A stretch of DNA of 63,897 nucleotides, counting the filler, from Reticulomyxa filosa (lineage: Eukaryota > Protista > Foraminifera): the NCBI GenBank assembly GCA_000512085.1. It is 12 parts of 12 records of this genome, joined end to end, with 100 filler letters (N's around TTAATTAATTAA, not from the genome) between each part and the next. Parts side by side here need not be neighbours in the genome. Positions count along the whole stretch, not along the records: positions 31,707 to 49,310 come from ASPP01019463.1; 11 more parts are not named here. The stretch is one strand, 5' to 3'. The notes below the pieces were generated by a model. It was not told the DNA's origin, searched no databases, and saw nothing but the letters and a program-made list of their open reading frames with translations. How positions within the stretch are numbered: position 1 is the first letter of the stretch; every line of letters begins with the position of its first letter. The translations under genes were made by a program, and so were the position numbers. Shown piece by piece: positions 31,707 to 50,429 of this stretch.

Positions 31707-32250
31707 ATGACAAATGATCATTCAATTTGTGTTTGTAACAATTGTATTCACATCCAAATGGTTTATACCAACAATCTGAAATTTTCAAAGGACAGACATT
31801 ATTCAAATGATCATTCAATTCTTTAATTTTCCCTTTGAAATCACATACTATTCCTTCATTTGTTTGTTTTTGTCCTTGTGATTCCTGTTCAAATTGTAGT
31901 GGACATATTACTTTCAAGGCACCAATGTGTCGTTGTATCGCGTCGCTTTGATAATATAAAACACTATCATGAGATTGAACAGGACAGGAATTCGGATTTG
32001 CTTTTAAAAATCGTTTCAAGCAATTTTCGCCAACAACAAGTGATTCACCGATACCTTTGTGTTGTGGACAACAGATTTCAATGGGATCGTTGGCAACTCG
32101 TTTGCAAATCAAACAGATAAAATGTTCAAATTGTTCTGGTTGATTCAATTGCAATATCCAATTTTTATCGAAACACGATTGTTCGACAGAAACTGGAGTT
32201 ACTCCAGTGTTTGTTTCTTTTGAAGTTTTCTCGTCTTCCACTCCACTCAT
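31707..32250 (-). CDS. RING-like + TRAF-type zinc-finger protein (3' partial)
   Basis: Close paralog of 12696-13267 (MSxxEDEKTSKE..GVxPVS.E.SCF.K.WILQ.NQ.EQ..HFICLICK..CWYKPFGC). Confidence 0.87.
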
Positions 32251-32749
32251 CTTTTTCCTCAGCTTCCAAAAGTTCTTTAGTTCTTTTCAATGCTATTAGT
32301 TTTGTAGAGTGTTTTTTGAATATTTTTATGAACGAAAAAGAAATTTTTTGTGTTTAAATTTATAAAATTGCAAGTGACTTTTGGTATTTTTTGTGTCACA
32401 GTTTTGAGTAGATTCAAGGCTTTTGTATAAATAAATTTTGTTTGCAAGAAAAAATAACACAAACTTTTTTATAAAGAATCAGAAACAATTCTATTTTCTT
32501 GCATAGTAGCCTCATTTTTTTTTATGGCAGGTTTTTTTTTTGCTTGCATATTAAATAAACAAAATGAAAATTATTTGCAAATGAGATAGCTTATCTCCAA
32601 AAGTGAAACTATTTTTCTATGGAAACCTTTATGAGCATTATTGCACAAGCTGACTAATAAAGAACAAATCAATCTGTTAATCATTGTTGAAGATTATCGT
32701 TCATATAAGTTATCAGATAGCTTGTTTGCATAGTTTTTTGTCCGTGGTC

Positions 32750-32810
32750 AATGATACAAAGAAAATTTGTATATATGAAATGATACAAAGAAAATTTGTA
32801 TATATGAAAT
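32750..32810. repeat. Perfect 29-bp tandem duplication
   Basis: aatgatacaaagaaaatttgtatatatga x2. Confidence 0.9.
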
Positions 32811-33120
32811 AAACGTAATTATTGAAGAGTGAAACTATGATGGATTAATTGAATTTTTAAATAGTTAGTTGACTTTATGAATTTGAATAGCATAAAGTAT
32901 TTAACAAAGAATTTGAAGCGTGTCATTATATATTTACCTTATTTAAAGATTGGAACGGGCCCTTTTTGAGAAACTTTTTAATTCATCACATTAATTAAAT
33001 TAAAATATAAATTACATTATTTTAATTTTAACTTGATAATTATATATCGCCTTTCAAGTTCCAAAAAAATTAAATAGACATAATTTACAAAAAAAATTAA
33101 AAATAAAAGCAAAATTGTAA

Positions 33121-35845
33121 TCAATCAAAATAAGAGCTGACTGGTTTGTTTGCAGTTTCATGGATATCAGCATTTTTTCTTTCGCTTGAATAACAAGAAT
33201 TCTGAGCAAGTCTATTTTCACTCGCACTACTAGTTTTCACGTTTTTTGCCTGCACTGTATCCACTCGAAACAAAACAAAAGTTGTGATACTGTTTTATTG
33301 TTTTCAATACTGTTCAAACCAATCAGAAAAAAAAGAGAGTATAGTTACGTGGGAACATGGGTGAGACCGAAGGATATCCATGAGTGTCCAAAGCTCCACG
33401 AAATGAAGGTAGTCCACTAAGCAACGGACTTGCTGTGTCCATCAAATCTTTACAAACAAAAAAAAAAAATATACATGTATATAAATAATATGTATACATA
33501 TATATATAACATCTACACTACAAAAGCACTCCACAACAAACAATTATTTTTTGTATACGTATAGTCAATATATATATATATATATATATTTTTTTTTTGA
33601 AAACTTGTTGCAGTGGACTCTCCTGCCAAATTCTGAGGATGACAACGATTGCGAAGGAAAGCATCGTGTTGGAATGAATTATGAGTGTAAAGGGGATTGG
33701 AAGAGGATGGATGAGCAACATGCAAGGACGTCAAATGTTTAGTGTGCGACTGCGCAAAAACGTTTCCTCCCAACTGTTTTTCATGGACTTGTTTATTTAA
33801 ATAAGCAATCACTCTTTGATTGGATTCAATGGCTTGATGGGCTTGCTCCAACTTCTCTTTGCAGCTCGTGAGGGTGTGTTTGAGGGACTCGACCTCTTTG
33901 CGAAGCTCGTCAATTGTGTTTTCCTTTTTCAACAAATCCTGACTCAAACTTTGGTGCTTTGTACGATCAGAGTCCAAGTCATTTTGGATTACGACCAATT
34001 GCTGCTCCATTCGCTTGCTTTCCGATTTGCTGAGACGTAATTCATTTTGCAATCGAGATATAATCGCATTCCCTTTATTTATCTCTTTCACACACTCACG
34101 CGTTTTTTTTTTCGCTTTTTTCCAGTGTCTTTTTCATTGCGTCTATTTGCTCTTCATTTGACACCTACATTTTGTTATCAAAACCAAAAGGTTTTATTAT
34201 ATACATATATATATATGTATATATATATATGTATATAATAAAACCTTTTGCTCTTGTGCAACTCTGGCCAACATTTCATTGTGATGACAGATTTCATTTT
34301 TATCTTTGACTTGTTGTTGCAAAGCAGCAAATTGCAAGGCGTACGTGTGTATTTGCTTTTCCTGTTCAAACTTCACAGATTCCAAAGTTTTGACCTCGCC
34401 TCGCAATGCTTTGAGTGCTTCGTTATTGTTCTGGCATCCCTCTTGCACATGCTTATGGTCGCCACACAACGTTAAGTACTTTGTTTCCAACTGCTTCTTC
34501 TCACTCGTCACCAATTGGTGCTTTTCAAACAGCTCGCTCAGCTGTTTTTCCAAACTTTTGCACTGCGTCTTCAATGTCTCCTCCGACGCCTCTTTCGCTT
34601 TCATCCATTCCTTTCGTGTGTTGTCTTGTGCTTCAATATGCTGAGATCGAATCTCGTTCACTTGTTGCGCATGCATATTTCTTATAACAGTATACATAAA
34701 TATATATATATTTATATATTTATAAATTTATATATATTTATATATTTATGTTTTTGTCAAAGAGAAAGAACTTCAATTCAGAGACGGAGTGGTCCAACTT
34801 TTGCTTGATTTGTTGCGCCAACTCTTGGCTTTTGTGTTTGTCTGCAAGTGCTTGTTGCAGTTGCACCTTGCACTCGGACAGGTCTTTGGCCAATTGCAGA
34901 CTCTCTGTTCTGAATCTCATCCAACAGTTGCTCAGATGCTTTTTCAAGCTTTCGTCGTTGGCACACTTCAACTTCAATGCAATGTGTTGCAGGTGCCGGA
35001 ATTGATTAGTCTCTTGCACACTCAAAATTGTTGTTGTGTCATGGTTTCCATGGCTTAGCACTGCCACGAATCTTTGTTTTGTTTTGTTTTGTTTTGCTTT
35101 TTTAAAATTTTTCTTTGCACTCAGTTGACAACACCAAACAAAAACAAGAAAATTGTCGTACTTTGGATGTTCGTCTTGTTTGCATTTCAGACATTGTTGA
35201 AATAAAGACATCAAAGATTTGGGAAAGCCATTGAAATCAACAAGCAATGCTTGTTCTGTTTTCAGTTGATAAAATTCCATTTCACTCACCGTCAATACGA
35301 ATAAAAAAAATGGGTCATTCTTTTTTTTTTTTAGTATCATTCAAGGTGTTGCTATCGATGGATACACTTTTTTTTTTTTCCCCATTTTTTTCAAAAAAAA
35401 AAAAAAGTTCATTTTAAACTTCATCAGTAATGGTTACAGATAATACGTAGTGGTTTTGCGATGCTTGCAAAACACATTGAATGCTTACTGCCAATTCTCG
35501 TGTTCGTGTGTCCCGAACAGAAGATTTCACAAGAAATGGCACATTTATTTGAAACAGCTGCTCATTGCTGTTGTTTGTGCGAGCACTCGTGCCATCTGAA
35601 TTCATTGTAAAATTTGTTGAGTCCAACATTTTCGATGTGTTGTTATTCCCTTGATAACCGGAGTTTATATATTCTATGTTTTCTTGACCGTTTCTTGTTC
35701 CTGTCAACAGTCGTTTTGCAGGAAAAGCATGTCATGTTTGGTGTTTGTTCTTTTGCTGTTTTTGTTGTATTTGCTACTTACTTTCATTTTCTAGTGCTGT
35801 TGTTCTTCCACGATATGCGTTCAGCAAAGATGATTGTTGGTGCAT
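33121..35845 (-). CDS. SAS6: Spindle assembly abnormal protein 6 (centriole cartwheel protein), multi-exon
   Basis: ITDE/NDPFFLFVLTVSEMEFYQLKTEQALLVDFNGFPKSLMSLFQQC (PISA motif). ETNQFRHLQHIALKL..NDESLKKHL keeps the head-head Phe (human F131 equivalent). Long coiled coil, VIAYLNKQ, and a C-terminal SSYFD*. Confidence 0.95.
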
Positions 35846-36078
35846 GAGTTTTTTTTAATTGTACATTGTCAAAAAAAACTTTTCTGGAGTACAAAATTTT
35901 GCTCTGAGACTGCTTGAAAAAACAATTTTGCAAATCTTAAACATTTTCTTCAGCCATTGACAACAGTTCGCAGTTCTTTTGTAATTAAACACACAGACAA
36001 AAAGGCAGGTGTAAACGCTTTTTTTTTTTAGTTCAAATATTTTCTTATTTCTTGTCCGACTAAACATTGCTCTCACCT

Positions 36079-37323
36079 ATGAGCGAAACCCACTTACTTA
36101 GGGAGAATACATCTCCTTACTTTGAATACCTCGTGTTATGGTTGCCACTTTGTGTTACCAAAGTTAAAAAGCTTTTTTGTTTTGGTGTGTACTTTTTCAA
36201 ATGGTCCTACTCATATGCACACACATACAAATAGAAAAGACATTTCGCTACAATATTTGTAGGGTATAGTTTTTTGATCCTTTTGAATGGAATTTCAATT
36301 TTTATAATAGCTGTATTGGATCGACACAAAAGTATAGTATTGTTATTATGGGACATTGTGGATATGGCAACGTCCATGCTTTTGTGTATTTACCAAGTAT
36401 ACTTTTTTAGGAGCTATTGGAACGACGTAAAAAACCTCCTTAATAACAAATCGAAAAAGAATGAAGAAGGATCTAACAACTTATGTTCAACAAAACGTCT
36501 TTTTTTGTTGTTATGGCTTCCTTATTCTTTCAGTGCTATCAGAATACCAAAAGTATACCAAAAAAAAAATAAAAAATAGAGCCACTTCAAAAAAAAAAAA
36601 TTCACTTTTTGCAAATATATACATATATTTTTTGTTTGTTTGAAAAAACGATAGTTTGTCTTTAATTCAAAATGGGCGATTGGATGGTACTTTTATTTTT
36701 TTATGCGCGTCTATGGATTGTATTGGCCTGAAATGATAATGGGATATGTATGTGGTCGAATATTTGAATGTTTGTCACAAAAATTTGAGAAGCTGAGTAA
36801 AAAGTTATCAGACAATTGCAATGCACAGGATTTGTGCCAGTATTATAAAGAGTATCAAACAGAAATTAAAGAATGGGAAAAACGAGTGCATTACTGGATC
36901 AATATCTTGTGTTTGAGACTGTTTTTTCAAGCGTGGTTTGGAGCCTCTGTGTTAATGAGCAGTTCAATCCGCAACTTTTCTCTTGTTGAATTGGTGTTTA
37001 TGTACGTGTGCATACTTTGCGATTTTGCATTTATTGGAGCCATTCTTTATCCTGCAATCACATTGCAAAGTCAATTCAATACATTCAAGCAAAATGTGAA
37101 GCAAAAATTGATTGATACCATGCCTTCACAATATGAATCATCGTTGGGTAATGTGGTTAATGAGGTGATCGCGCTTACGAGATTAAATCAATTGACCGTG
37201 GAGTGTCCTTATCAAATCACTTTGTTTGGTATTACTCTCAGTCACATGGTTATCTTCAGAATTATTGGTGCTCTCATCATTGCCAAATTTTTGTCTGTTA
37301 TCAATGCTAGGGATGCACTTTGA
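36079..37323 (+). CDS. Seven-TM protein (~355-360 aa, 3 exons) with 7TMIC/gustatory-receptor-like (GRL/DUF3537) topology
   Basis: Exons ~36079-36162, 36235-36552 and 36655-37323 join in frame via GT-AG introns. Seven hydrophobic segments, long charged helical loops after TM4 and TM6, and a C-terminal LNQL..CPYQITLFGITLS..IFRIIGALIIAKFL. Confidence 0.65.
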
Positions 37324-39542
37324 TTTGTGACTACTTAATAATTTCATAATCGATCTAAAACACTACATACAACTAATTTCTTTTTTTTTCTTATCTTATT
37401 AAGAACATGACCAAGGAAAGCGCTTTTTTTAATAATTGATATCTCTGTATGATAAACAATACTTGTTCATCAAGATCTTGCCAAATAAATTGGATAAATT
37501 TTTTTCTTTGAAGCATTTCATTTATAAAAGAAGATATTGTTTAAAAATTATTATATATTCCAAATCTGTCAAAGAAAACTAATTATTATTCAATATGTCT
37601 CAACTTTTATTAAATTGTGTACATTCTTTTCGTCAAAATAGAATTCAATTTTCTTCTATTTCAATATTTAATGGTTTTCGAAATAAGGAATATGATAAAA
37701 CATTTGAATATAGTTTCAACAAAGCAAATAATATATTATCTTTGCTAATATTCATCATTTGATGCAAAAATAAAATTTATGTTATATCTTTTTATTTTTT
37801 GCATTCATTGCACTGGAAAAGATATATATGCAGACCTTTAAATATCTTTTACGCTGATGTTCTAAATAGCAAAGGTATTTACAGTAACAAAGCGTTTTAA
37901 ATAAAAAATTTCATGCTTATCTAACAATCGCATAAGTAATTTCTACACCTGACTTCAGTTACTTTTTCATTAATGTTTTCTATTCAAAGAAGAAAATACA
38001 TTGTATTCATATTGGATTTATTTGTTTATATTTGGTTACTCTTTCTTCCAGTTTAATAAGATTGCGATCATTCAAAATAACTTTTTTGGTATAAAACATT
38101 GAACACATTAATGTGTCTGCTTCGTTAAAAAAAACTTTGTCAAAAGTGTTGTGCTCGTGACATTTGCGAGTTTTGTTTTTTTTTTACGTTAAAAAGATGA
38201 TTTTATGCCAGATGGATTTTTTCAGATTGCATGTAAACATTTTAGCTGTTGCTTTTATATTATATGACGGTAACATTTTGATACGACTAAAACATGATTT
38301 TGTTTATCGCTGAATTTTTTATAAGAAAATTAATAACACAATGTGCAAAATTGGATATGTGAATAGTGTGACATTTTTAAATAAAGAAATTTATAAATTT
38401 TGTTGTCTGTACTGCCTAGAAAGCAGATGGTTGATATGTTTGGATAAAATAGGCAAACAGCAAGAATTGACAGAGCAAACTAAAATTTTTATGGTAACGG
38501 CTGATAGCTAGTTCCAAAACTTTTTTCACAAATTTTTGTTGCTGAGTTAATTATAATAAACTTTCGCAACATGAACTTACTCTAATTGTTTATTTTTATT
38601 TTCTTAAAAAAAATCAAGTAGACAAAATTTTTTTATCATTTTTTGGAAAATATATCTTAGTTTCGAAATCAATCAGAACAATCAAAAATCTTTGACATTT
38701 CCATTTGTGAAATCTATACTTTTGTGTAAATGATAATTCTACTAGACTGGAGCTGTTGCAATATCAAAAGAGATGTACCGTGTTGGACAAACATTGAATT
38801 TATTTATTTTAATGTGTGTGACGTGTATTTAATGTATATATATTAGCTAGTCATAGTTATGTGTAAGTTCATGTAAATATATACGTTGCTTGCAAAAGTT
38901 ATCGAATATGCCACATGACAAATGTTGATTTGATGAACAACAAGTATTAAGTTATAGCATTTCGAATATGCATTTGGAGTGTAGAAAGCGAACACTCACA
39001 AAATTTTTTTGTAAGAAAAGAGGGGCGAAAGGGGGGGACAAATACTTATGATTATGAAATTTTTAGAATATACGTTTGTAGGAAAAACAAAACATGTATT
39101 TGTTACATGGTGTTACATGGAAAATCACTTGCTTTTAGCACATCTGGGACCAATCATTTGCAAGATTTGATACGAATGTGTGCACGTCGACTCCGATGAC
39201 TGGAGCAGCGACAATATAAAAATGCAGAGCACGTAGTAGTCAAACATGAAATTATCGCATTTTGAAGAAAATGTGAAAGATTGGGTAATGGTTGTACAAG
39301 TGGTTTCAGAAACAAGGAAGTCGAAACATCAGCAACTGGGCTTATTCGTTTCCCAAACAAAAGAAAAAACAAAGACAAGAAAAAAAATGAACAACAAAAA
39401 AAAAGGTGGAGAGAGAGATAAGAAAGGGCACAAAAGTGGAAACTATGTTACAGTCAAAACATGGACAAAACTGTGGACAAACTCAAACCACAACAAAAAA
39501 AAAAAAAAAGGGGGGGTGTGATGTTTGTTTTTTTTTTTTTTT

Positions 39543-41244
39543 TTACCAGAAATTGGAAAGCCTTTTACCCTTTTGAGCACTTTCGGTGACTACTTCAATT
39601 TTTTCTTCAATAGCTTGCAAGTCAACACTGGCCCTCCAAACATCTCGCTTGCTCATTTCAGTGTCGCGTGTATCATTAATTTCTTGGATGAGTTCCTCGA
39701 AGCGCTCTTCCAGTTCACTGATAACCAATCGAACGCTATCAACTTCGGGAGATTTAAGAATGGCAGGACTTTGAGACAACTGCTTGACCCGTTCAAAGGA
39801 CTTTTTCAAGTCGCCCATTTCTTTTTTAACCTCCCTCAATTCCTGCGAGTCGACCTTACGTTCGGTAGACTCGTTTGCGCGAATGAAGCGCCCACTGCCC
39901 AGACGACTCTGCGGTCTGTTTCTATCTTTGAAATTGACCGGGACAATCAAGTCGCGCAATTTCGTCAAATCGGTGCCTTTTTTATGCAAGCTAACGAGTT
40001 CTTTGAGGGCGAGCACCCACAGATCGCACTCGTCGGTGCTCTTGGCCACGAGATCGAGAGACTGGTAATCTCTGCCAAAGACGACGGAAAACGAGGCCTT
40101 TTCTAAGGCGGTCTGTTGGAATTTGCGGAACACTTGAGTCTCCTGACCTTTCAGCACATCCTTGATATCGCTGATGCGAATGCAAGTGGATTCCATCTTC
40201 TTCTTGCGACTGAACCATTGGATCGTGGTGTTATCCTTCGACAGCTGCGTATATTTGAAGTGCGGAAAGCCGCGTCGGTGCGGGTATTTTAGCAATGGAG
40301 TGCCACGATGGAGTTCCACCAAGGCATCTGTTTGTGCTTTCGATGGACCTGAATCTTTTCCAGATGATGTTGTTGTTGTTGTTGTTGTTGATGATGATGA
40401 TGGCCTTGTTGTTGTTGTTGTTCCTGGTCCTGTTCCTGTTGCTAATGATGAAGATGCAACTTGATTGCTTGCACTTCGAGTACGTGCCTTGTTCATCTCT
40501 TCACTCAATTGCTTGGCAGCATTTTTAGCTTTGTCGTTATCGCTGTCACTATCTTTGTCATCATCCTCGTCGTCATCTTCTTCTTCTTCTTCTTCTTTGT
40601 CTTCTTCCCCTTCCTCGATTTTCTTCTTCTTCAAAGAAGAAGAAGAAGATGCTGAAGAGGAAGACTTCACAGGCACCTCCTCTCCTTCTTGGATCACCTT
40701 CAACCCCACTCCTGTCTGTCCTTGGATCGTCTTTGGCGGTGCTGTGTTCCTATCGCTGGACGAACTTTTTGCTGTCGTTTTTGTTGTTGTTGTTGCTGTT
40801 GCTGTTGCTGAGGCCCCTTTCGAAGTATCGAACCCAAAAAAATCGTCCAAGTCATCCCCTCCTTTCTGTGATCCCTTGTTGTTGTTGTTATTATTATTAT
40901 TATTGCTATTATTGTTGCCACTAGTAGGTCCCACCATGTCAAACAGCCCTTGCACGATTTGCGTATTTACACTGCTTCGTGGGTTCACTGTCGCTGGTAT
41001 TGCTGTCTTGCCTGGCTCGTTATTCGTTTCTTGTTCTGTTCCGTTCTGTCAATATGTTTTTATATACACTTATATGTATATACCATATATGTATACGTAA
41101 TTTTGTCAGTAGTTTTTGGTTTTTTTTTTTTTTTTTTTTTTTTTTCTTTGTCCAATTTTTGAAGTGTCAACATTTAACTGAAAAAAATCCTAATAGATCA
41201 TCTGCTGCGGTCTGCTTGCTGGCCTTTGGAGAAAAGGCCTTCAT
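39543..41244 (-). CDS. PH-domain protein (PLC/plant PRAF-RLD-type PH) with low-complexity N-terminus and C-terminal coiled coil
   Basis: LHRGTPLLKY..RRGFPHFKYTQLSKDNTTIQWFS..GQETQVF..SFSVVF..SLDLVAKSTDECDLWVLALKEL. The start codon is uncertain. Confidence 0.85.
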
Positions 41245-41714
41245 TTGGTTTGTTAGCAGTGACGGCGGAGCGGAGACCTTTTCAACAAACACATTTTCGC
41301 AATAACGTCGTTCGTAACGGAGACACACAGTCAGAGAGATACACTCTTTTTTTTTTTTAAATAAATATAGTTAGAGACAAACTCGTTTCTCCTTGGATTT
41401 TGATCTTGTCGCTGTTCTTGGTTGCTCGAGCATGCTTCTTCTTCTTTTTTTTTCTAGATGGGATTGGACTTGTTTATTCCCTTGCTCAAAAGTTCCCCTT
41501 TCTTTGCGTCGTTTACTCGCTTCAGAGCTTTAGAGTTGTAACGGTTCATAAACAACGTTACCGATGTAAACAGCCAAGATTTAATATACACAGCGTAGAA
41601 ACGAAAAATGATGGTTTTAACTGATGGGCTCAGGTTGTTAGAGAAAGAAGAGAAAATGCAATTTGTCTCTCAAAACCCGTGAGTGTGCAGCAAAAAAAAA
41701 AGATTTAGCAAAGA

Positions 41715-43782
41715 ATGACTTCTGCAGAAAATTTGCAAAGCCCATTGTTACAAACTAATTCGCTTTCATTAAGCCAAAAAAGCGAGATTTTGAACATCCC
41801 AGAGAGCAATCAACATGACGGTTATTGTTTAGTTTTCCGCAGCGAGACTCCGGAATACGAGTTACTTGTTGAGGGCAAGCGGTTATATGTGCGTGAGAAG
41901 ACGGATCCCGATGGCAATTCAGAAAACTGGCTCAAGTTCAGAGGGAAACAGATTTTTGTTTGAAGTGTTAACTGTCTCCTCTCATCACCACCAAGTTATC
42001 ATCATCACCAAAAAACAATAACAGAAAGTGGTTCAAAACAGTGCGACAAAGGGTATTAAGTGACCAAGAGAAAAGCAACCTGTTGTATAAATTAGCGCTT
42101 GGAAAAACATTCTATGACATTCAGCCATCTCCAGATGGCAAGTATTTCGCAGTGGTGGTTTCAATGTCGATCCGTTTAGTTGTTTTTTTTTTTTTTGAAT
42201 TAAAAAAAAAAATTATATACATACATTTATATATGTACATATACAAATATATATATGTATGGATAAAAAAAGTAAATCTCAAAGACTAAAGCAAATATTT
42301 ATTTATTTTTTTTTTTTTTGATTTTGTAATTGCAATTGTTTGCTAACAAACTAAACCATTGGGCCAATGAAGAGGACGCTGTGAAATGGGCGGACGATCA
42401 CGACATTGACATGGAGATCGAGCCGGAGGCGGCGGTTCGAGCGGGCAAAGAGATATCCCAATTCACCTTGGCGAAGCGTACATACCTGCCAGGTTACGAC
42501 AAGAAGCGAGTGATAACGGAAGGGTTGACGGAGTTTGAAATGTTGGGGCTGGAGTTGTGGAACAAAATTCATATCCCGTACGAATCGTCCATTGACCCCA
42601 AAGTATACAAAGTGAAAGGCTACGGACGCAGCATCTTGAACAATCGCTTGTTCCTGCGCATCTTGTATGAATACATGACTGCAGATGAAGGAGTTATGTT
42701 TATATACATATATACATATATACATATATATAGATATATATATGTATGTATATGTATTTTGTTAACTTTGTGCACTTTGAATAATAACAACAGAGCGGTG
42801 GCTGCGGCTTCAATGTGACGTCGATGATGAACAGTACACACCCTTTAGTCGGATTGTATGCCACAAACGATCCCCTAAATGAACGTCCGAAACTGGACAT
42901 TTGGAATGCATTTCCCACGCCGGCGTCGGACGAACTCATTGTCCAAAACGTGCGCGACTACTACGGCGAAATGACTGCCTTTTATTTCGCCTTTCTTTTG
43001 CATTATCAGCGGTGTCTCTTTTACGCTTGTCCCGTCGCTATAATCTTTTCATCGCCCAAGTGTCTGTGGGTATTATTGATATCCCTGGATCTTTAGGTAA
43101 ATACATACATAATATATGCATATATATATATATATATATATATATTATGGTATATATAAATGAATAAATATTTATTTATATATTTATATATTTATATATA
43201 CCATACATATTTGCTAGTACTGACCCTTTTGGCGGTATTATGGTCCACGGCCACAATTGAGTCATGGTATCGTCGAGAAAATACTTTACAATTTCAATGG
43301 GGAATGACCAGATATACTGCCACCGAAAGTTTGTAGTTGTTGTTTTTATATTGATTATACGTAATATTGACTCAAAATCTTTTTTCTCTGTTTTGATGTT
43401 GGAAAGTGCCAAGACCTGGGTTCCAAGGAAAATTGGAACTGTCCAGGATGAATGGCGAAATTGTGGAAGTTATTCCCTCCCAACTTTGGTACATTGTTCG
43501 CATCATGCTGTCGATGTCGGGCATTATCGGCTGCATTTCTTGTGTTATCGCTGTTGTCATTGGAATTTGGACTTTGAAAAAACGAACCGCTAACGATAAT
43601 ATGTCCGTGCTCGTTGGCATGCTCAATGCCGTACAAATCACTGTTTCGTCGTCTCGTCCATCTTTTTATATATATAGTCTGTTCATATCTAATTCATTTT
43701 TAAAATGTGTTGTATATTTACTTTTATATTATGCACGCGCATGCATTCGCACATGCGCATGCAAAACAACAACATGTGTTCA

Positions 43783-43816
<34 letters not shown>

Positions 43817-45265
43817 GTATATGTATACATATATTTTTTAAATGTGGATTTGTTTGGTAGTAGTTATAATTGTTGTTGTCGTTGTGTGTGTGTATTGTTG
43901 TTGTTTGAATATATAAGATATTCAACTACGTGTACATATATTTAGCCTTTTGGTTAAATGAAATGGAAGGACACCGATTGGAAGAAGAATGGTACAATCA
44001 CTTAGTGGTGAAGCGCGTGTTTTTCTTGATTATTAACTCCTTCAACTCTTTGTTCTATTTGGCGTTTGTCCAAGACTTTTCCAGCCATCGCGAATGTTTG
44101 GCGGCGGTTCGAATCCAATTGGTCACTCTGTTTTTGTCCATGATTTTTATTCAAAACGCCATGGAAGTCTTTATCCCTAAAATGATGGTGTTACGTTTCT
44201 TTCACAAAACAAATTCTTTTTTTTACCAAAGTTAATAATTGTTTGAAATGAAACAGGTATTTGCAGATATGGTGCACTAGCAACAAGGCGAATGATGCTG
44301 CGCTATACAGTCAGTACACGGATAAAGAGACAGAGACAGAGAGAGAGAGAGAAAGAAGAAGGAGGGGGGGGGGGAAGGGAGTGTTTAATGAAATACTAAT
44401 AAATAAATATTTTTAAAACAAACAAATGATAATTGTAAATGCGATAGTGGCCGAGCGTTCGAAAATGTCATTGCCTTCGAATGTGATAAGACTCGACGAA
44501 AAGGGGGACATACAGAAGGAAAGCAATAAAGAAGAAGAAAAAGAAGAAGAAAAGGACATACCACACATAGAAGCACAGACGAAAAGCCAAGAGAAGACAG
44601 TAGTGACCACTCCGAAAGACAAAAAAATAGTCGACGAACGCATTTGGGATGATGTGTGGGCTCAATTCTATTTGCTTGATGCGCCAAATGTCTTGGACAA
44701 CACGTCCGAAATAATCGTTCAATATGGCTATACTATGCTATTTGTTGTTGTGTTTCCCTTAATGTTTTTCATGGCGGCCATCAACAACTTCATCGAGTTT
44801 CGTCTCGATTTCTATGAGTTGACACAATCGAGAAGGGCAGTACCTTATGCGGCTTCGGGGATTGGCGTTTGGAAACAAGTGCTAAGTGCCTTTGGCACAG
44901 TTGCCATCTTTTCCAATTTAGCAATTATTACATGGAGGACCGACTTGGTTAATTGGGATATTACCTCATCAAAAGAAACGAATAAAGTAGTTTACTTTTT
45001 CATTCTCTCATTTTTATTGTTGTTGTTCCAATTTGTAATGCGCTTTTTCATACCCGATGTAACTGTTGAGACTCAAGAAGCATTGGCAAGACAAGAAGTT
45101 CCTTTTTTTTTTTGTAATATTGTATATCTATTTTCAACCTTTCCTTTGTTTTTGTTTGTCACTTGTTTGAAGGCTTGCGAGAAATATTTGCTATTGGGAG
45201 AAATCAAAAAGACAGCTCGAAAATCTAGAGCCACCTCTTTTTTTTCTACAGACGACCAGGATTGA
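41715..45265 (+). CDS. ANO: Anoctamin/TMEM16 Ca2+-activated channel or scramblase, multi-exon
   Basis: VRDYYGEMTAFYFAFL; WLNEMEGHR..YNHLVVKRVFFLIINSFNSLFYLAF; QNAME; DNTSEIIVQYGY..FPL..NNFIEFRLD..RR..GIGVW. The acidic Ca2+-site residues are retained. Confidence 0.95.
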
Positions 45266-45631
45266 GCAAAAATCATTTGCAGGTCTTTTTTTTGTGAGTA
45301 TTGTTTGTGTGTAATATGCATTGAAGGACTGCTTGTGTTGCTTCCATTATTACAGATTGCTATATTCTATATTTTACTTCTAATTCATTCTTCCATCCTA
45401 GAAAAAAAAATGCTTCTCTTGATAAAACAGACACCATGCTCTTTTTTATAGAAAAAAGTCAGATGATTTGGTGTAAAGTGTATTGTGACACAGTGATGGA
45501 AGAAAAAATATAAGAATAACACCCCTTGTGGGTTTTTTTAAAAACTATGTCCTGAAATGAAAAAAAGTAAACATAAATACAGTAAACTCATCCCGCGCCA
45601 AACAATAAACTAAAAAAAACAAAAAAATTAT

Positions 45632-47478
45632 TTATTTAAGGTCATTTGGTTGAAATCCAAAAATAGAAGCAAAAGTATCAAGCCTGCTATTAAATTGATG
45701 AATATTTTTATCTAAATAATGTTTAGCAACTTGTCTTCCAATTAATTCTCTTTTAATGGCCCACATTTCAGTCTGTTTTCTGTAATTAAAACGAGGAATA
45801 GTTGCCAAAGGTGCGATACCATGAAATTGAATAAAACAACAACAAAAACGCTTACATAAATTTAACATAGTTTGATTTGCACAACAGCATAATTTCCATT
45901 CTTGTTCAAAATCATAACCACTTCCCAAATAAATAATTAGAGCACCAAGTAAACCATAAACAGTAGTAAAAAATCCTCCAACTGATGAAATGACACTACC
46001 CCAAGTATATTTAGTTTCATGAACATAATTTAATTGAATGTCATCCCAGTTCGGATACATGACGATCGATGTTGTATATTGTGTTTCATCGTATCCAATG
46101 TTTGTTTGTTTGATTACCATTGATTGGTCATAATATCCACTTGCCTTTTTTTTTTTTTTTTGGTTAAAAAATATATTTTATTTTACATATCCAAATAAAA
46201 CAAAAAGATAAAATGACTAAACAGATGTTGTCATAAATAAATAATTGGTTTTGTGTGCCAATTTATCTTTATAAAAACTAAAGTCAAAATTTCGATACTG
46301 AACACTTCCCCAAGGCAATAACTCTGCTGAGCCTTTTTTAATATCAAATTGATCGTTTTCAATATCATTCATTGATGTTAATCCTACACTTTTTTTTATG
46401 GTTATTCTTGCTGTTTTTCAAATTATAATAAAATATACGCTACATATACACGTATACAAACATATATGAATATACCCCAATAAAAAGAATAAGTGAATCC
46501 TTTATTCGAGATATACACATTTTGACTTTGCGTTGAAGTACTGCTATTTTCGCTTTTGTTCGCATGAATTTCGGTACCGTGAACAGTTAGTATAATTGTG
46601 TTCAATTTATTGTTTTTCTCACTGTCACCGGAAAAATATTTTAATTTTGATTGGATGATCAAATATTCATCTAAATCAAAATTATTAGTTTGACCGTTCA
46701 CCCAAACGCTGTTCCATTTTTGTTTGGTTTTTATTACAACCCATTCATCATCACATTTATGTTTATTACAATATGTTTTATATTCTTTAATTGAACTTAA
46801 GTGTAATACGACGACATTGTTATTTGTGATGTTCTCTATCGTTTTTTATTAGTATGCAAATATATATATATATGTATATGTGTATGTATATGTATTCGTA
46901 AAGAAAATAAAAAAAAATAAACCTTGGAGTTGAATTTGTTCAACATTGTTTCTTTCTCTGACAATTGACAGAGTTGACAATTGAACTTGACTAATATTGA
47001 TTAATGGAAATGCGACATAAATAACGGGTAATGGTATTTGATCGTATTCCAATTTAACATGCATTATGACGGTTTGATTTTCGTTTTTATCAAAATAAAC
47101 AATCAATTGAAATAATATTAGATATACAATTACAATGACCAATACCGTAACATTTCGACTACACAACAATATTTTATAACGAATATTACTTGTACGTATA
47201 TCATCTAATGTTATATTGTCTTCTACATTTGGCTCATTTGTTGATTCAATCTTATGTGGTTGTGTTGTATCTGTTATCGTATTACTACTCTTGTGACGTG
47301 AAATATTATGTTTTGCAGGAAGTGACGCAATTGCTGTTGCTCTTGTACGTAATGATTGACGTTCTTCTGTTTCTTCGTCAAGTTCGTTTTCTTTCTCGTC
47401 AAGAACAATGTCATTAGTAACTACAAGAAATTGATCAGTAGTTTCTGAATCAAGAAGTTTTGGTGAGTCTTTTGACAT
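45632..47478 (-). CDS. Two-TM protein with a large beta-rich ectodomain, DEG/ENaC- or PAC(TMEM206)-like; multi-exon
   Basis: TM1 VTVLVIVIVYLILFQLIVYF is followed by TVIMHVKLEYDQIPLPVIYV. The pre-TM2/TM2 segment is YVHETKYTWGSVISSVGGFFTTVYGLLGALIIYL. Both termini are predicted cytoplasmic. Confidence 0.55.
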
Positions 47479-47699
47479 AATTCGAGTGTTTTTGTCTTCT
47501 GCAGTTTTTCACTTTTGATAACCTTTTGTATCCATAGTTTTTTTGTTTTTGCTTTGACAAAAAAAAAATTAATTCTTTTTGATTTTGTTTCCTTCTGTTC
47601 GCTTTGATTTTTGTTAGAAATTTTAAAAAAAGTTAAAAATTTGGTGTCAAATGCAACAAAAAAAACTCTTCTTTTCTTAGTCAAATCATTTCAAAACTA

Positions 47700-47920
47700 A
47701 TGTCCTTTAAAGCATTTCTTTGTATCGAAAAAAAATGTACGAAGTAACACTTAGTTCCTTGACGTTGGAGCATTTGAAAGACAAAATAAAGACAATACCT
47801 GACTCCAGCAACAACAAAAGAATATTTAAAATCAGTGATCGCAATGATCGTAATGTGGTCAACGACCAACAAATTAGACAAGTATTTCAATTACAATCTT
47901 TTCCTCTTTATTTGAAGTGA
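47700..47920 (+). pseudogene. Small PB1/ubiquitin-like-fold candidate domain, frameshifted in a poly-A run
   Basis: MSFKAFLCIEKK then a shift to MYEVTLSSLTLEHLKDKI..FKISDRNDRNVVNDQQIRQVF..PLYLK*. One extra A in the run restores the frame. The fold call is inferred from the beta-beta-alpha pattern. Confidence 0.4.
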
Positions 47921-48559
47921 AATTTTTTTTTGCATAAAATTTGCAATGTTTGTTTGGAATGTGCAAAAAAAAAACAAACGGTGGAAAAAAAAGAATGAAA
48001 CTGGGAAAAGACTAGGTAGTGAATTTGATGAGTAATTTGTCAGCGTCTCATACGAAAGACACAACGGAAACTGCACAATAATATGACAAGAGATACATTA
48101 ATGTCGTTGTCAGCGCCACATCAGCGTAAATTCGTGATAACAACAATAACTCCCCTTTCTCGTCCAATTTTGATTGAATCTATATTTAACGTCTCAATAA
48201 CTAATGAATGATCAAGCATAGTTTTCATCATGAGCTAACTACACGCCGTTTTTTTTGGATAAATTTCATATTTTTTTTTATTAAATATTTGAAAATTGAT
48301 TTTTTAATATTATTTTGCTGAAACATAATAAAAAATTAATTATAAACATGCAATTGAATACTTTTTTCAAAATATTGATTAACTGCAACTTCTTATTATT
48401 AGTTAATTTTTAAAAAAAGTGAAATTGACAATTTAAGTTAGTTTTTTATTTTTTATTTTTTTCATTATTACATGGAGAAAACTAACTATTTAGTTTTGGC
48501 TGTTATTAATATGTTGAATGTCCAATTTTTTTATAACAATGTCTTGCATGAGTCTTCTA

Positions 48560-48985
48560 TCTGCAATACTGCAGCAACAACAATTTAATTTTTTCATCAA
48601 TTCTTGATTGTCTCGCATGCACATAATAGAATACTTTGATAAATGCTTTTAGCTTGAAGTAGAACACTTGAAACTTCATGATCATTAACGCATATTTAAC
48701 AACTAGATCTTCTAATACTCTTTGTCTTGACCAGTTTTTAAGCAAGTTTCGGCCGTGGCTTGATTGCTTTACAGTCAGGTGGTTTTTGGGATTCCTTCGA
48801 ATAGCATCAGTTTATTCGCAATTACTTCTTACCATTTGCCTTGTTTGCAATAGTTATGTCCTTGATCTTTGTGCTCCTTTTCTATTTGTTTCACGAGCTT
48901 TTTCAAGTACCGCTTTTTCGGTAGTATACACAATGATTTTCCCTTGTTCCCTCGCTTTTCCTCAACGCTGCCCATTCGATTAAAG
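48560..48985 (-). pseudogene. STI1: STI1/HOP co-chaperone pseudogene fragment (TPR2A/2B-DP2 region)
   Basis: NRMGSVEEKRG..; DQGHNYCKQGKW*EVIA/TDAIRRNPKNH; NDHEVSSVL; MRDNQELMKK. Stops, frameshifts and deletions. Confidence 0.55.
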
Positions 48986-50429
48986 GCAATTTTACAAAAA
49001 ATTAAGTGAAAAAAGTCATGTAATTTTGTAATTGATCGAAGTTTTACAATAATATGAAAAGCAACAAAGTAAAAGATCTGTATCTAATATTTAGTAGTAG
49101 TACAACAAAAAAGCTTAGAAAAGTTATTTTGAATGATTGAAAGATTGTTGAATTTATCAACAAGATTTTAGACAAAGTGCAAAAAAAACTGTAAAATTAA
49201 TCTACAGTAAGAAATTTGACTCTTTCGACTCCGAGGAATCCTTACAATTTGATTAAAAATTAACAAACAACACATTACATATGATTTATATTATTTTAAT
49301 AAAAAAGAAANNNNNNNNNNNNNNNNNNNNNNNNNNNNNNNNNNNNNNNNNNNNTTAATTAATTAANNNNNNNNNNNNNNNNNNNNNNNNNNNNNNNNNN
49401 NNNNNNNNNNAATATTTCTTTATTTTCAAATAATAACAATAAAAGTATCAGTATTAGTATGATATACACAATAAGTTTTGGATGATTTGATATACTAATC
49501 GAATGTATATAAACATTGATACAAAAATGTAATATTTTCTGGATCAAATAAAAATATTGTTTTTTGTGAATAATGATTCTTTTTGTTAAATGAAATAATG
49601 AACAAAATTTTGATTGTTACTAAAATGCTTATTATATAAATATAATTTTCCTTTTTGTTCTTGTACACAACAACTACACAACTTTTGTTACAATATTTCT
49701 CTCTTAATGAACTCTCATAAACAAATAAATAGTGCTATCACATCTATTCAAGTGCAGTATTTTTCCTAAGACTGGAGAAATTTAATTAGACAAGATTCCA
49801 ACACACGAATACAAATGTTTCAATCATCCAAAGCCAAAGATACAACTTATTTCATTTTGTCAACTTTGTTTTCATTGACTAGTGATCCTTCTAATCATCA
49901 AAAGTTTTTCAAGACAATAATTAATAATTTTATTTTTTGATCAATATGAAAATCAACAAAAGCCAGGAGAAATTACAATTCCCAAGCTGTCCAATATTGA
50001 TAAAGAGATGAAATTTAATTATTGCACTGCACATACAAATATTCCAGGATTATTCATGTTGAAATGTTACAATATATTCAAAATAACTTATTGAAGAATA
50101 TTGGTTCTTATAAAAGAAAATCTCTCTTCTCTTCAAATAACGATGAAACAAAAGTTTATTTAAATTATTAAATTGAAATACTCACAAAATTATAAAAAAT
50201 TTTCATTAAAAAGTGGTATCATTTTTTTTTCGATAAAAAGGAAAATATTTCACTTTCTCACAGCTTGTCGCAATCCGTAAAATTCAAATTCCAAATTTAA
50301 GAAAGTTTGGTCAAATTTTTATTCGAACAAAGGGGTTTTTAGGAACAGTGGCTGTTGTTTAAGTGGTTGTTATTCTTGTTTTGTTTCCTAAAGTCAACTG
50401 ACAAAAAAGAGACGATCATTATTACTAAA

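Follow-up and report, generated by a model that had tools for sequence, protein, structure and literature searches.

We analyzed a window (the whole stretch of DNA under study) of 63,897 nucleotides, filler included, joined from 12 records of the Reticulomyxa filosa genome (assembly GCA_000512085.1), in which positions 31707-49310 correspond to contig ASPP01019463.1 (17,604 bp). Reticulomyxa filosa is a naked freshwater foraminiferan belonging to the Rhizaria. As judged from its sequence, the locus at 36079-37323 on the plus strand is a real three-exon gene of this species for a polytopic membrane protein of about 356 residues, and the protein probably belongs to the 7TMIC superfamily as a highly divergent, sequence-orphan member; this superfamily includes insect OR/GR, animal GRL, plant DUF3537 and PHTF proteins. 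The link to the superfamily rests on predicted architecture, with no detectable sequence similarity, and we infer superfamily homology, tetramerisation, ion conduction and ligand gating alike. An earlier note on this DNA had read the locus as a 7TMIC/GRL-like channel; the topology, the helix pattern and the ESM Atlas neighbours agree with that reading, whereas similarity by sequence or Pfam was not found. No other family claims the protein in Pfam, the sequence libraries or the solved-structure sequences.

The deposited annotation at the locus consists of a lone single-exon open reading frame (ORF) of 206 aa at 36703-37323 on the plus strand. In the spliced model, three exons (36079-36162, 36235-36552 and 36655-37323) are joined across GT-AG introns with phase 0 at both junctions, and 28, 106 and 222 codons give 356 aa, with the ATG at 36079 and the stop codon TGA at 37321-37323. 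Three spliced exons encoding about 357 aa had been proposed in the earlier note, and all of the helix strings quoted there, including WAIGWYFYFF..IMGYVCGRIF for TM4, were found in the exon translations. The elements of the gene are as follows (a slash marks the exon-intron boundary).

36079-36162, plus strand: exon 1, 28 codons with the favoured donor; holds the ATG and a short hydrophobic stretch.
36163-36234, plus strand: intron 1, 72 nt, GT..AG (GTTAAAAA...ACAAATAG); the exon 1 frame hits a stop at 36232.
36235-36552, plus strand: exon 2, 106 open codons; acceptor AG at 36233-36234, donor aaa/GTATAC; carries TM1-TM3.
36553-36654, plus strand: intron 2, 102 nt, GT..AG (GTATACCA...AACGATAG); in-frame stop at 36577.
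36655-37323, plus strand: exon 3, 222 codons and the TGA; acceptor AG at 36653-36654; S4 to S7b.

Since the upstream frames stop within the introns (36232 and 36577), splicing is needed to join the exons. The GC content falls to 19.6% in intron 2, against 31-36% in the exons on either side. The ATG of exon 1 is the last one before exon 2 whose frame is able to splice in phase onto exon 2, and the nearest ATG upstream of it on the same strand lies at 35844. Four in-phase GT donors are available to exon 1 (36133, 36154, 36163 and 36187), of which that at 36163 (aaa/GTTAAA) is favoured and resembles the donor of intron 2; the 3' end of exon 1 is uncertain because of the other three. Searches and folding were carried out exon by exon, and the AlphaFold2 (AF2) model discussed below covers exon 3, the C-terminal half of the protein.

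When 1.84 billion representative proteins were searched exhaustively with HMMER, exon 3 had a sole relative beyond its own ORF, namely R. filosa RFI_27112 (P0002), annotated as 'hypothetical protein' on contig ASPP01023564 (31% identity, E 1.6e-9). In direct BLASTP comparison, exon 3 matched this paralog at 2e-23 and exon 2 matched its N-terminal exon at E 3e-5, and the alignment of exon 3 begins at residue 1, upstream of the deposited ATG, across the TM4 region (PE..MG). Exons 2 and 3 thus belong to one conserved protein, since exon 2 matches RFI_27112 and the alignment extends upstream of the deposited start, and the coding potential of the predicted exons is above chance. It could be argued that the gene model is wrong, in that expression is confined to the 206-aa ORF (36703-37323) or the locus is a silent pseudogene, the upstream exons being chance frames. 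This is in line with the deposited annotation, with the lack of any public RNA run listed for the locus, and with exon 1, which has an ambiguous donor and no homology to the paralog locus. We nevertheless regard it as very unlikely, because exon 2 offers 106 open codons between an in-phase consensus acceptor and donor, encodes three hydrophobic helices and has a counterpart in the paralog, and because the conservation runs past the deposited ATG; the deposited 206-aa form would start in the middle of a transmembrane helix.

Beyond this pair, when exon 3 or the two-sequence profile was run against 5.8 billion proteins in a word-indexed search, the ORF itself and RFI_27112 came back, with no further relative at E<=1 or E<=10. 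For exon 2, exon 3, the paralog and the paralog piece, scanned at E<=1 and E<=10, Pfam gave no hit, 7tm_7 (PF08395) and DUF3537 (PF12056) included; Papo_T_antigen and SLS1_N appeared as sub-threshold noise. Nothing relevant was found among the sequences of solved structures for the profile, exon 3 or the C-terminal 64 residues; a match to RNA polymerase beta in that search (E 0.13) was dismissed as noise. Viral and metagenome contigs held no related locus, and tblastn detected no tandem paralog in the contig piece 31707-49310. The earlier note had called for a count of paralogs in the genome; the protein libraries yielded one R. filosa paralog. By sequence, the two proteins are a two-member orphan family. 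One criterion of the superfamily asks that a reciprocal search return GRL/DUF3537 or no other family, and our results correspond to its second clause only.

Two features of the paralog comparison are recorded here in their own right. The deposited 47-nt 'intron' of RFI_27112 (L001:4387-4433, contig ASPP01023564), in the TM5-TM6 region, ends right after an A8 run, and one added base turns it into 48 nt encoding 16 residues (FVVSLIIYWNTQKK...) that align column for column with GASVLMSSSIRNFS of the window. A homopolymer sequencing error or a frameshift is therefore more probable here than an intron, in which case the EL3 loop and the end of TM5 are likely missing from the deposited protein of 297 aa. 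In addition, cysteines C55 and C61 (D.C..YK) in the cytoplasmic S4-S5 turn are kept in both paralogs (window 36790-36850; L001 4255-4300), with a spacing of 5-8 residues.

The membrane topology was derived from a Wimley-White octanol scan (19-residue windows, dG<0). Seven non-overlapping windows were obtained, three in exon 2 (dG -12.7, -8.8 and -6.9) and four in exon 3, in accordance with the seven hydrophobic segments proposed earlier. Residues 10-28 of exon 1 form a weak window (dG -2.6) around YLVLWLPLCV, with a central proline; this stretch is a possible S0/TM0, putative as exon 1 itself is uncertain, and TM0 is no membership criterion according to Himmel et al. 2023. A Kyte-Doolittle scan gave just five strong segments because TM3 and TM4 are rich in aromatic residues. 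The helices of exon 2 and the loops of the whole protein, the latter counted on the assumption of an inside N-terminus, are listed below (IL, inside loop; EL, outside loop; K+R, lysines plus arginines).

36247-36321, plus strand: TM1, exon 2.
36337-36411, plus strand: TM2, exon 2.
Between TM2 and TM3, plus strand: IL1, K-rich, 30 residues, exon 2.
36502-36543, plus strand: TM3, exon 2.
N-terminus, inside: 32 residues, K+R 4.
IL1, inside: 30 residues, K+R 6.
IL2, inside: 41 residues, K+R 8.
IL3, inside: 59 residues, K+R 4.
EL1, outside: 5 residues, K+R 2.
EL2, outside: 9 residues, K+R 2.
EL3, outside: 8 residues, K+R 1.
C-terminus, outside: 7 residues, K+R 1.

In total, 22 basic residues fall inside and 6 outside, so that by the positive-inside rule the N-terminus is predicted to be intracellular, as had been expected, and the C-terminus extracellular. 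The published inclusion criteria for 7TMICs are a length of 350-500 aa, seven transmembrane helices, an inside N-terminus, longer inside loops and a lack of significant similarity to other families (Benton et al. 2020; Himmel et al. 2023). The 356 aa of the candidate fall within the range of Benton et al. 2020, and its inside loops (30, 41 and 59 residues) exceed the outside ones (5, 9 and 8), including the long second and third inside loops that the earlier note had pointed out.

With the paralog added, the AF2 model of exon 3 reached a pLDDT of 66 and a pTM of 0.54. A single-sequence AlphaFold model was discarded (pLDDT 54), its Foldseek hits being meaningless designed bundles. The predicted elements are given below in exon-3 residue numbers and compared with BmGr9 and MhOr5, whose helix boundaries were taken from PMC11100771.

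36667-36810, plus strand: S4 (TM4 and cytoplasmic extension), residues 5-52, 48 aa; BmGr9 52, MhOr5 54.
36823-36957, plus strand: S5 (cytoplasmic extension and TM5), residues 57-101, 45 aa; BmGr9 53, MhOr5 52.
36982-37128, plus strand: S6 (TM6 and cytoplasmic extension), residues 110-158, 49 aa; BmGr9 45, MhOr5 45.
Residues 159-163: S6-S7a gap, 5 aa; BmGr9 5, MhOr5 4.
37144-37191, plus strand: S7a, cytoplasmic helix, residues 164-179, 16 aa; BmGr9 15, MhOr5 15.
37192-37242, plus strand: S7a-S7b linker, residues 180-196, 17 aa; BmGr9 14, MhOr5 13.
37243-37317, plus strand: S7b, C-terminal transmembrane helix and putative pore helix, residues 197-221, 25 aa; BmGr9 21, MhOr5 25.

The order and lengths of the predicted elements closely match those of BmGr9 and MhOr5, and the model of this C-terminal half thus displays the long S4, S5 and S6 helices and the split TM7 with a hairpin that characterize 7TMICs. 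The S5 helix has a pLDDT of 62-82 per 10-residue block. The final helix is split, as had been anticipated from the sequence, into a helix at 164-179, a beta-hairpin (predicted strands 188-190 and 193-195) and a helix at 197-221, with the S7a/S7b break placed at a conserved E-x-P; confidence in the split is moderate because the local pLDDT of the hairpin is about 55-60. An S7a-hairpin-S7b arrangement has been described as a hallmark of GRs (PMC12635824).

Conservation between the paralogs is highest in the S7a block (L.RLN.LT.E.P), where columns L174, R176, L177, N178, L180, T181, E183 and P185 are invariant, and at the extreme C-terminus, where both proteins carry K.LSV.N..D.L. This agrees with the concentration of conservation in the anchor domain and pore helix reported by Himmel et al. 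2023. Two basic positions of S7b, R202/K and K211/K, are common to both paralogs. At its end, S7b has the sequence IIAKFLSVINARDAL, in which T-Y...Q-F does not occur, and the canonical TYhhhhhQF motif is indeed absent, as the earlier note had remarked.

Structural and language-model neighbours taken from the ESM Atlas are the strongest evidence for the superfamily assignment. The Atlas models of the two deposited proteins come from one language model, and the two Atlas searches are counted as one source. The structure neighbours of the 206-aa ORF comprised two arthropod clusters and one cnidarian cluster at TM-scores of 0.72-0.84 and a DUF3537 cluster at 0.75 over 197 residues, the next neighbours falling to 0.45 or less; its feature hits scored 0.92-0.96, with 7tm_7 clusters among them at 0.92-0.93. 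For the paralog, six of ten neighbour sets contained 7tm_7, 7tm_6, DUF3537, PHTF or DUF267/Trehalose_recp (TM-scores 0.55-0.73 over 207-284 residues), including a DUF3537 cluster at 0.72 and a PHTF cluster at 0.61.

Comparison of the AF2 model with solved structures is compatible with a 7TMIC. Foldseek against PDB placed Gr43a first (E 0.21, probability 0.92-0.95), followed by more Gr43a entries, BmGr9 and the OR5-Orco complex. VIA-align ranked seven OR/GR entries within the top 24 of 48,161 representatives, with the largest coverage (188-207 of 222 residues), and the aligned range of MhOr5, 193-469, spans S4 to S7b. Two results count against membership in the superfamily: none of the Foldseek hits in PDB reached E<=0.001, so that the match to Orco and GR structures foreseen earlier was obtained in rank and not in significance, and an Atlas shape search with the AF2 model gave unrelated helical clusters and no 7TMIC cluster. 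When the S4-S7 half is taken in isolation, its collapse into a generic bundle is to be expected. Both results might accord with a Reticulomyxa-specific polytopic membrane protein unrelated to 7TMICs, whose long antiparallel helices and cytoplasmic bundle would be like the C-terminal half of OR/GR proteins through convergence or because long four-helix bundles resemble one another in general. We consider this rather unlikely. The generic bundles retrieved are soluble, cover about 155-167 residues, and lack both the S7a-hairpin-S7b ending and the layout of seven transmembrane helices, inside N-terminus and long inside loops, whereas the R. filosa protein is predicted to have both; its helix lengths are within a few residues of those of BmGr9 and MhOr5; and both paralogs independently draw 7TMIC families (language model, ESMFold), with a clear gap to other folds.

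A signal from giant viruses was also seen. The top language-model neighbours of the paralog were clusters dominated by Nucleocytoviricota (313-420 aa, no Pfam), one structural neighbour of this kind had TM-scores of 0.72/0.69, and weak, non-significant Foldseek matches to Catovirus, Faunusvirus and Edafosvirus proteins were found in BFVD. Taken at face value, these matches would suit a gene of foreign origin, taken over from a giant virus and not inherited from an ancestral eukaryote. Such an origin is hardly credible: tblastn of viral contigs found no relative, the BFVD E-values carry no significance, and the gene has spliceosomal introns and ordinary eukaryotic neighbours (SAS-6, a PH-domain protein and an anoctamin). 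The signal also fits viral proteins being 7TMIC-like themselves, and giant viruses may encode such proteins.

If the candidate is a 7TMIC, analogy with the solved OR/GR structures suggests a cytoplasmic N-terminus and a peripheral helical domain made up of S1-S6. The tetramer would be held by an anchor bundle consisting of S7a and the cytoplasmic extensions of S4, S5 and S6, and its central pore would be lined by four C-terminal S7b helices.

Among known systems, insect GR/OR proteins (7tm_7 PF08395 and 7tm_6 PF02949; Orco, MhOr5, BmGr9 and Gr43a) share with the candidate the predicted seven transmembrane helices, inside N-terminus, short outside and long inside loops, S4-S6 helices (45-49 residues here), a 16-residue S7a, a hairpin linker and a 25-residue S7b almost at the C-terminus, and they supplied the Foldseek top hit and the VIA matches of highest coverage. 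They differ in several respects: the S4-S5 loop has about 4 residues in our model and about 57-65 in BmGr9 and MhOr5, and the candidate shows no sequence or Pfam similarity, has no TYhhhhhQF, lacks a phase-0 intron ahead of the TM7 exon, and carries two conserved basic residues in S7b. As the protein comes from a unicellular rhizarian, an animal-style chemosensory role cannot be assumed. DUF3537 proteins (PF12056) and the unicellular GRLs or Class-A Euk7TMICs, which are recorded from Thecamonas, Vitrella, chytrids, Protostelium and trypanosomatids (Benton et al. 2020; Benton & Himmel 2023; Himmel et al. 2023), show the same inclusion features as the candidate, and DUF3537 clusters are structural neighbours of the exon-3 ORF and the paralog at the TM-scores given above; unlike DUF3537, the R. 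filosa family has no Pfam match and two detectable members. PHTF-like Class-B 7TMICs (PF12129) resemble it in the proximity of the PHTF cluster to the paralog, whereas their IL1, between TM2 and TM3, is long (Himmel et al. 2023); with an IL1 of just 30 residues, the candidate would be nearer to the Gr/DUF3537-like than to the PHTF-like type.

That unicellular eukaryotes, and even prokaryotes, have 7TMICs has already been published (PMC7746228; PMC9998090; bioRxiv 10.1101/2023.08.30.555482). Reticulomyxa and Foraminifera are unmentioned in the searchable texts of the 7TMIC papers, a scope that leaves out the Dryad lists of Himmel et al., and 'Rhizaria' occurs once in Benton & Himmel 2023, merely in spelling out SAR. 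What is new here is probably a candidate 7TMIC member together with a corrected gene model; one candidate is added, and the superfamily concept is unchanged. The superfamily has been proposed to be as old as the last eukaryotic common ancestor or older, its unicellular sampling is patchy, no function is known for any unicellular 7TMIC, and a candidate from Foraminifera would supply a data point for Rhizaria. Truncated models can hide such proteins from screens for seven helices, as illustrated by the 206 aa deposited here against about 356. A further proposal, that both Reticulomyxa genes represent a foraminifera- or Rhizaria-specific 7TMIC clade missed by screens through defective deposited models, seems to us improbable; if true, the conserved basic pore-helix residues and K.LSV.N..D.L could point to a selectivity or gating logic unlike that of insect cation channels. 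Reticulomyxa can be grown in culture, and physiological tests might be possible thanks to its large reticulopodial network.

Several neighbouring genes were recognized on the same contig. A homolog of SAS-6, the centriole cartwheel protein, occupies 33513-35707 on the minus strand. Its SAS-6_N domain lies at 34738-35340 (E 2e-19), and the coiled-coil exons come after this domain in the gene, which places them at lower positions of the window; the SAS-6 gene and the candidate channel gene are transcribed in divergent directions and are separated by about 370 bp. An anoctamin/TMEM16 gene lies at 42330-45265 on the plus strand (Pfam PF04547, E 4e-35 for the last exon); it is deposited as two genes (323 and 279 aa) that are probably one split gene. 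At 45632-47478 on the minus strand, the ORFs belonging to a gene deposited with 538 aa gave no Pfam hit and encode at least two hydrophobic helices (e.g. VTVLVIVIVYLILFQLIVYF and GGFFTTVYGLLGALIIYLG), in keeping with an uncharacterised membrane protein. Microsatellites of the TATATACA type, conspicuous in this genome, recur at the ends of ORFs and in what are probably introns, and their translation gives YIYIYI runs; examples are found in the window at 33513-33560, 34197-34230, 41050-41100, 42700-42760 and 43800-43900.
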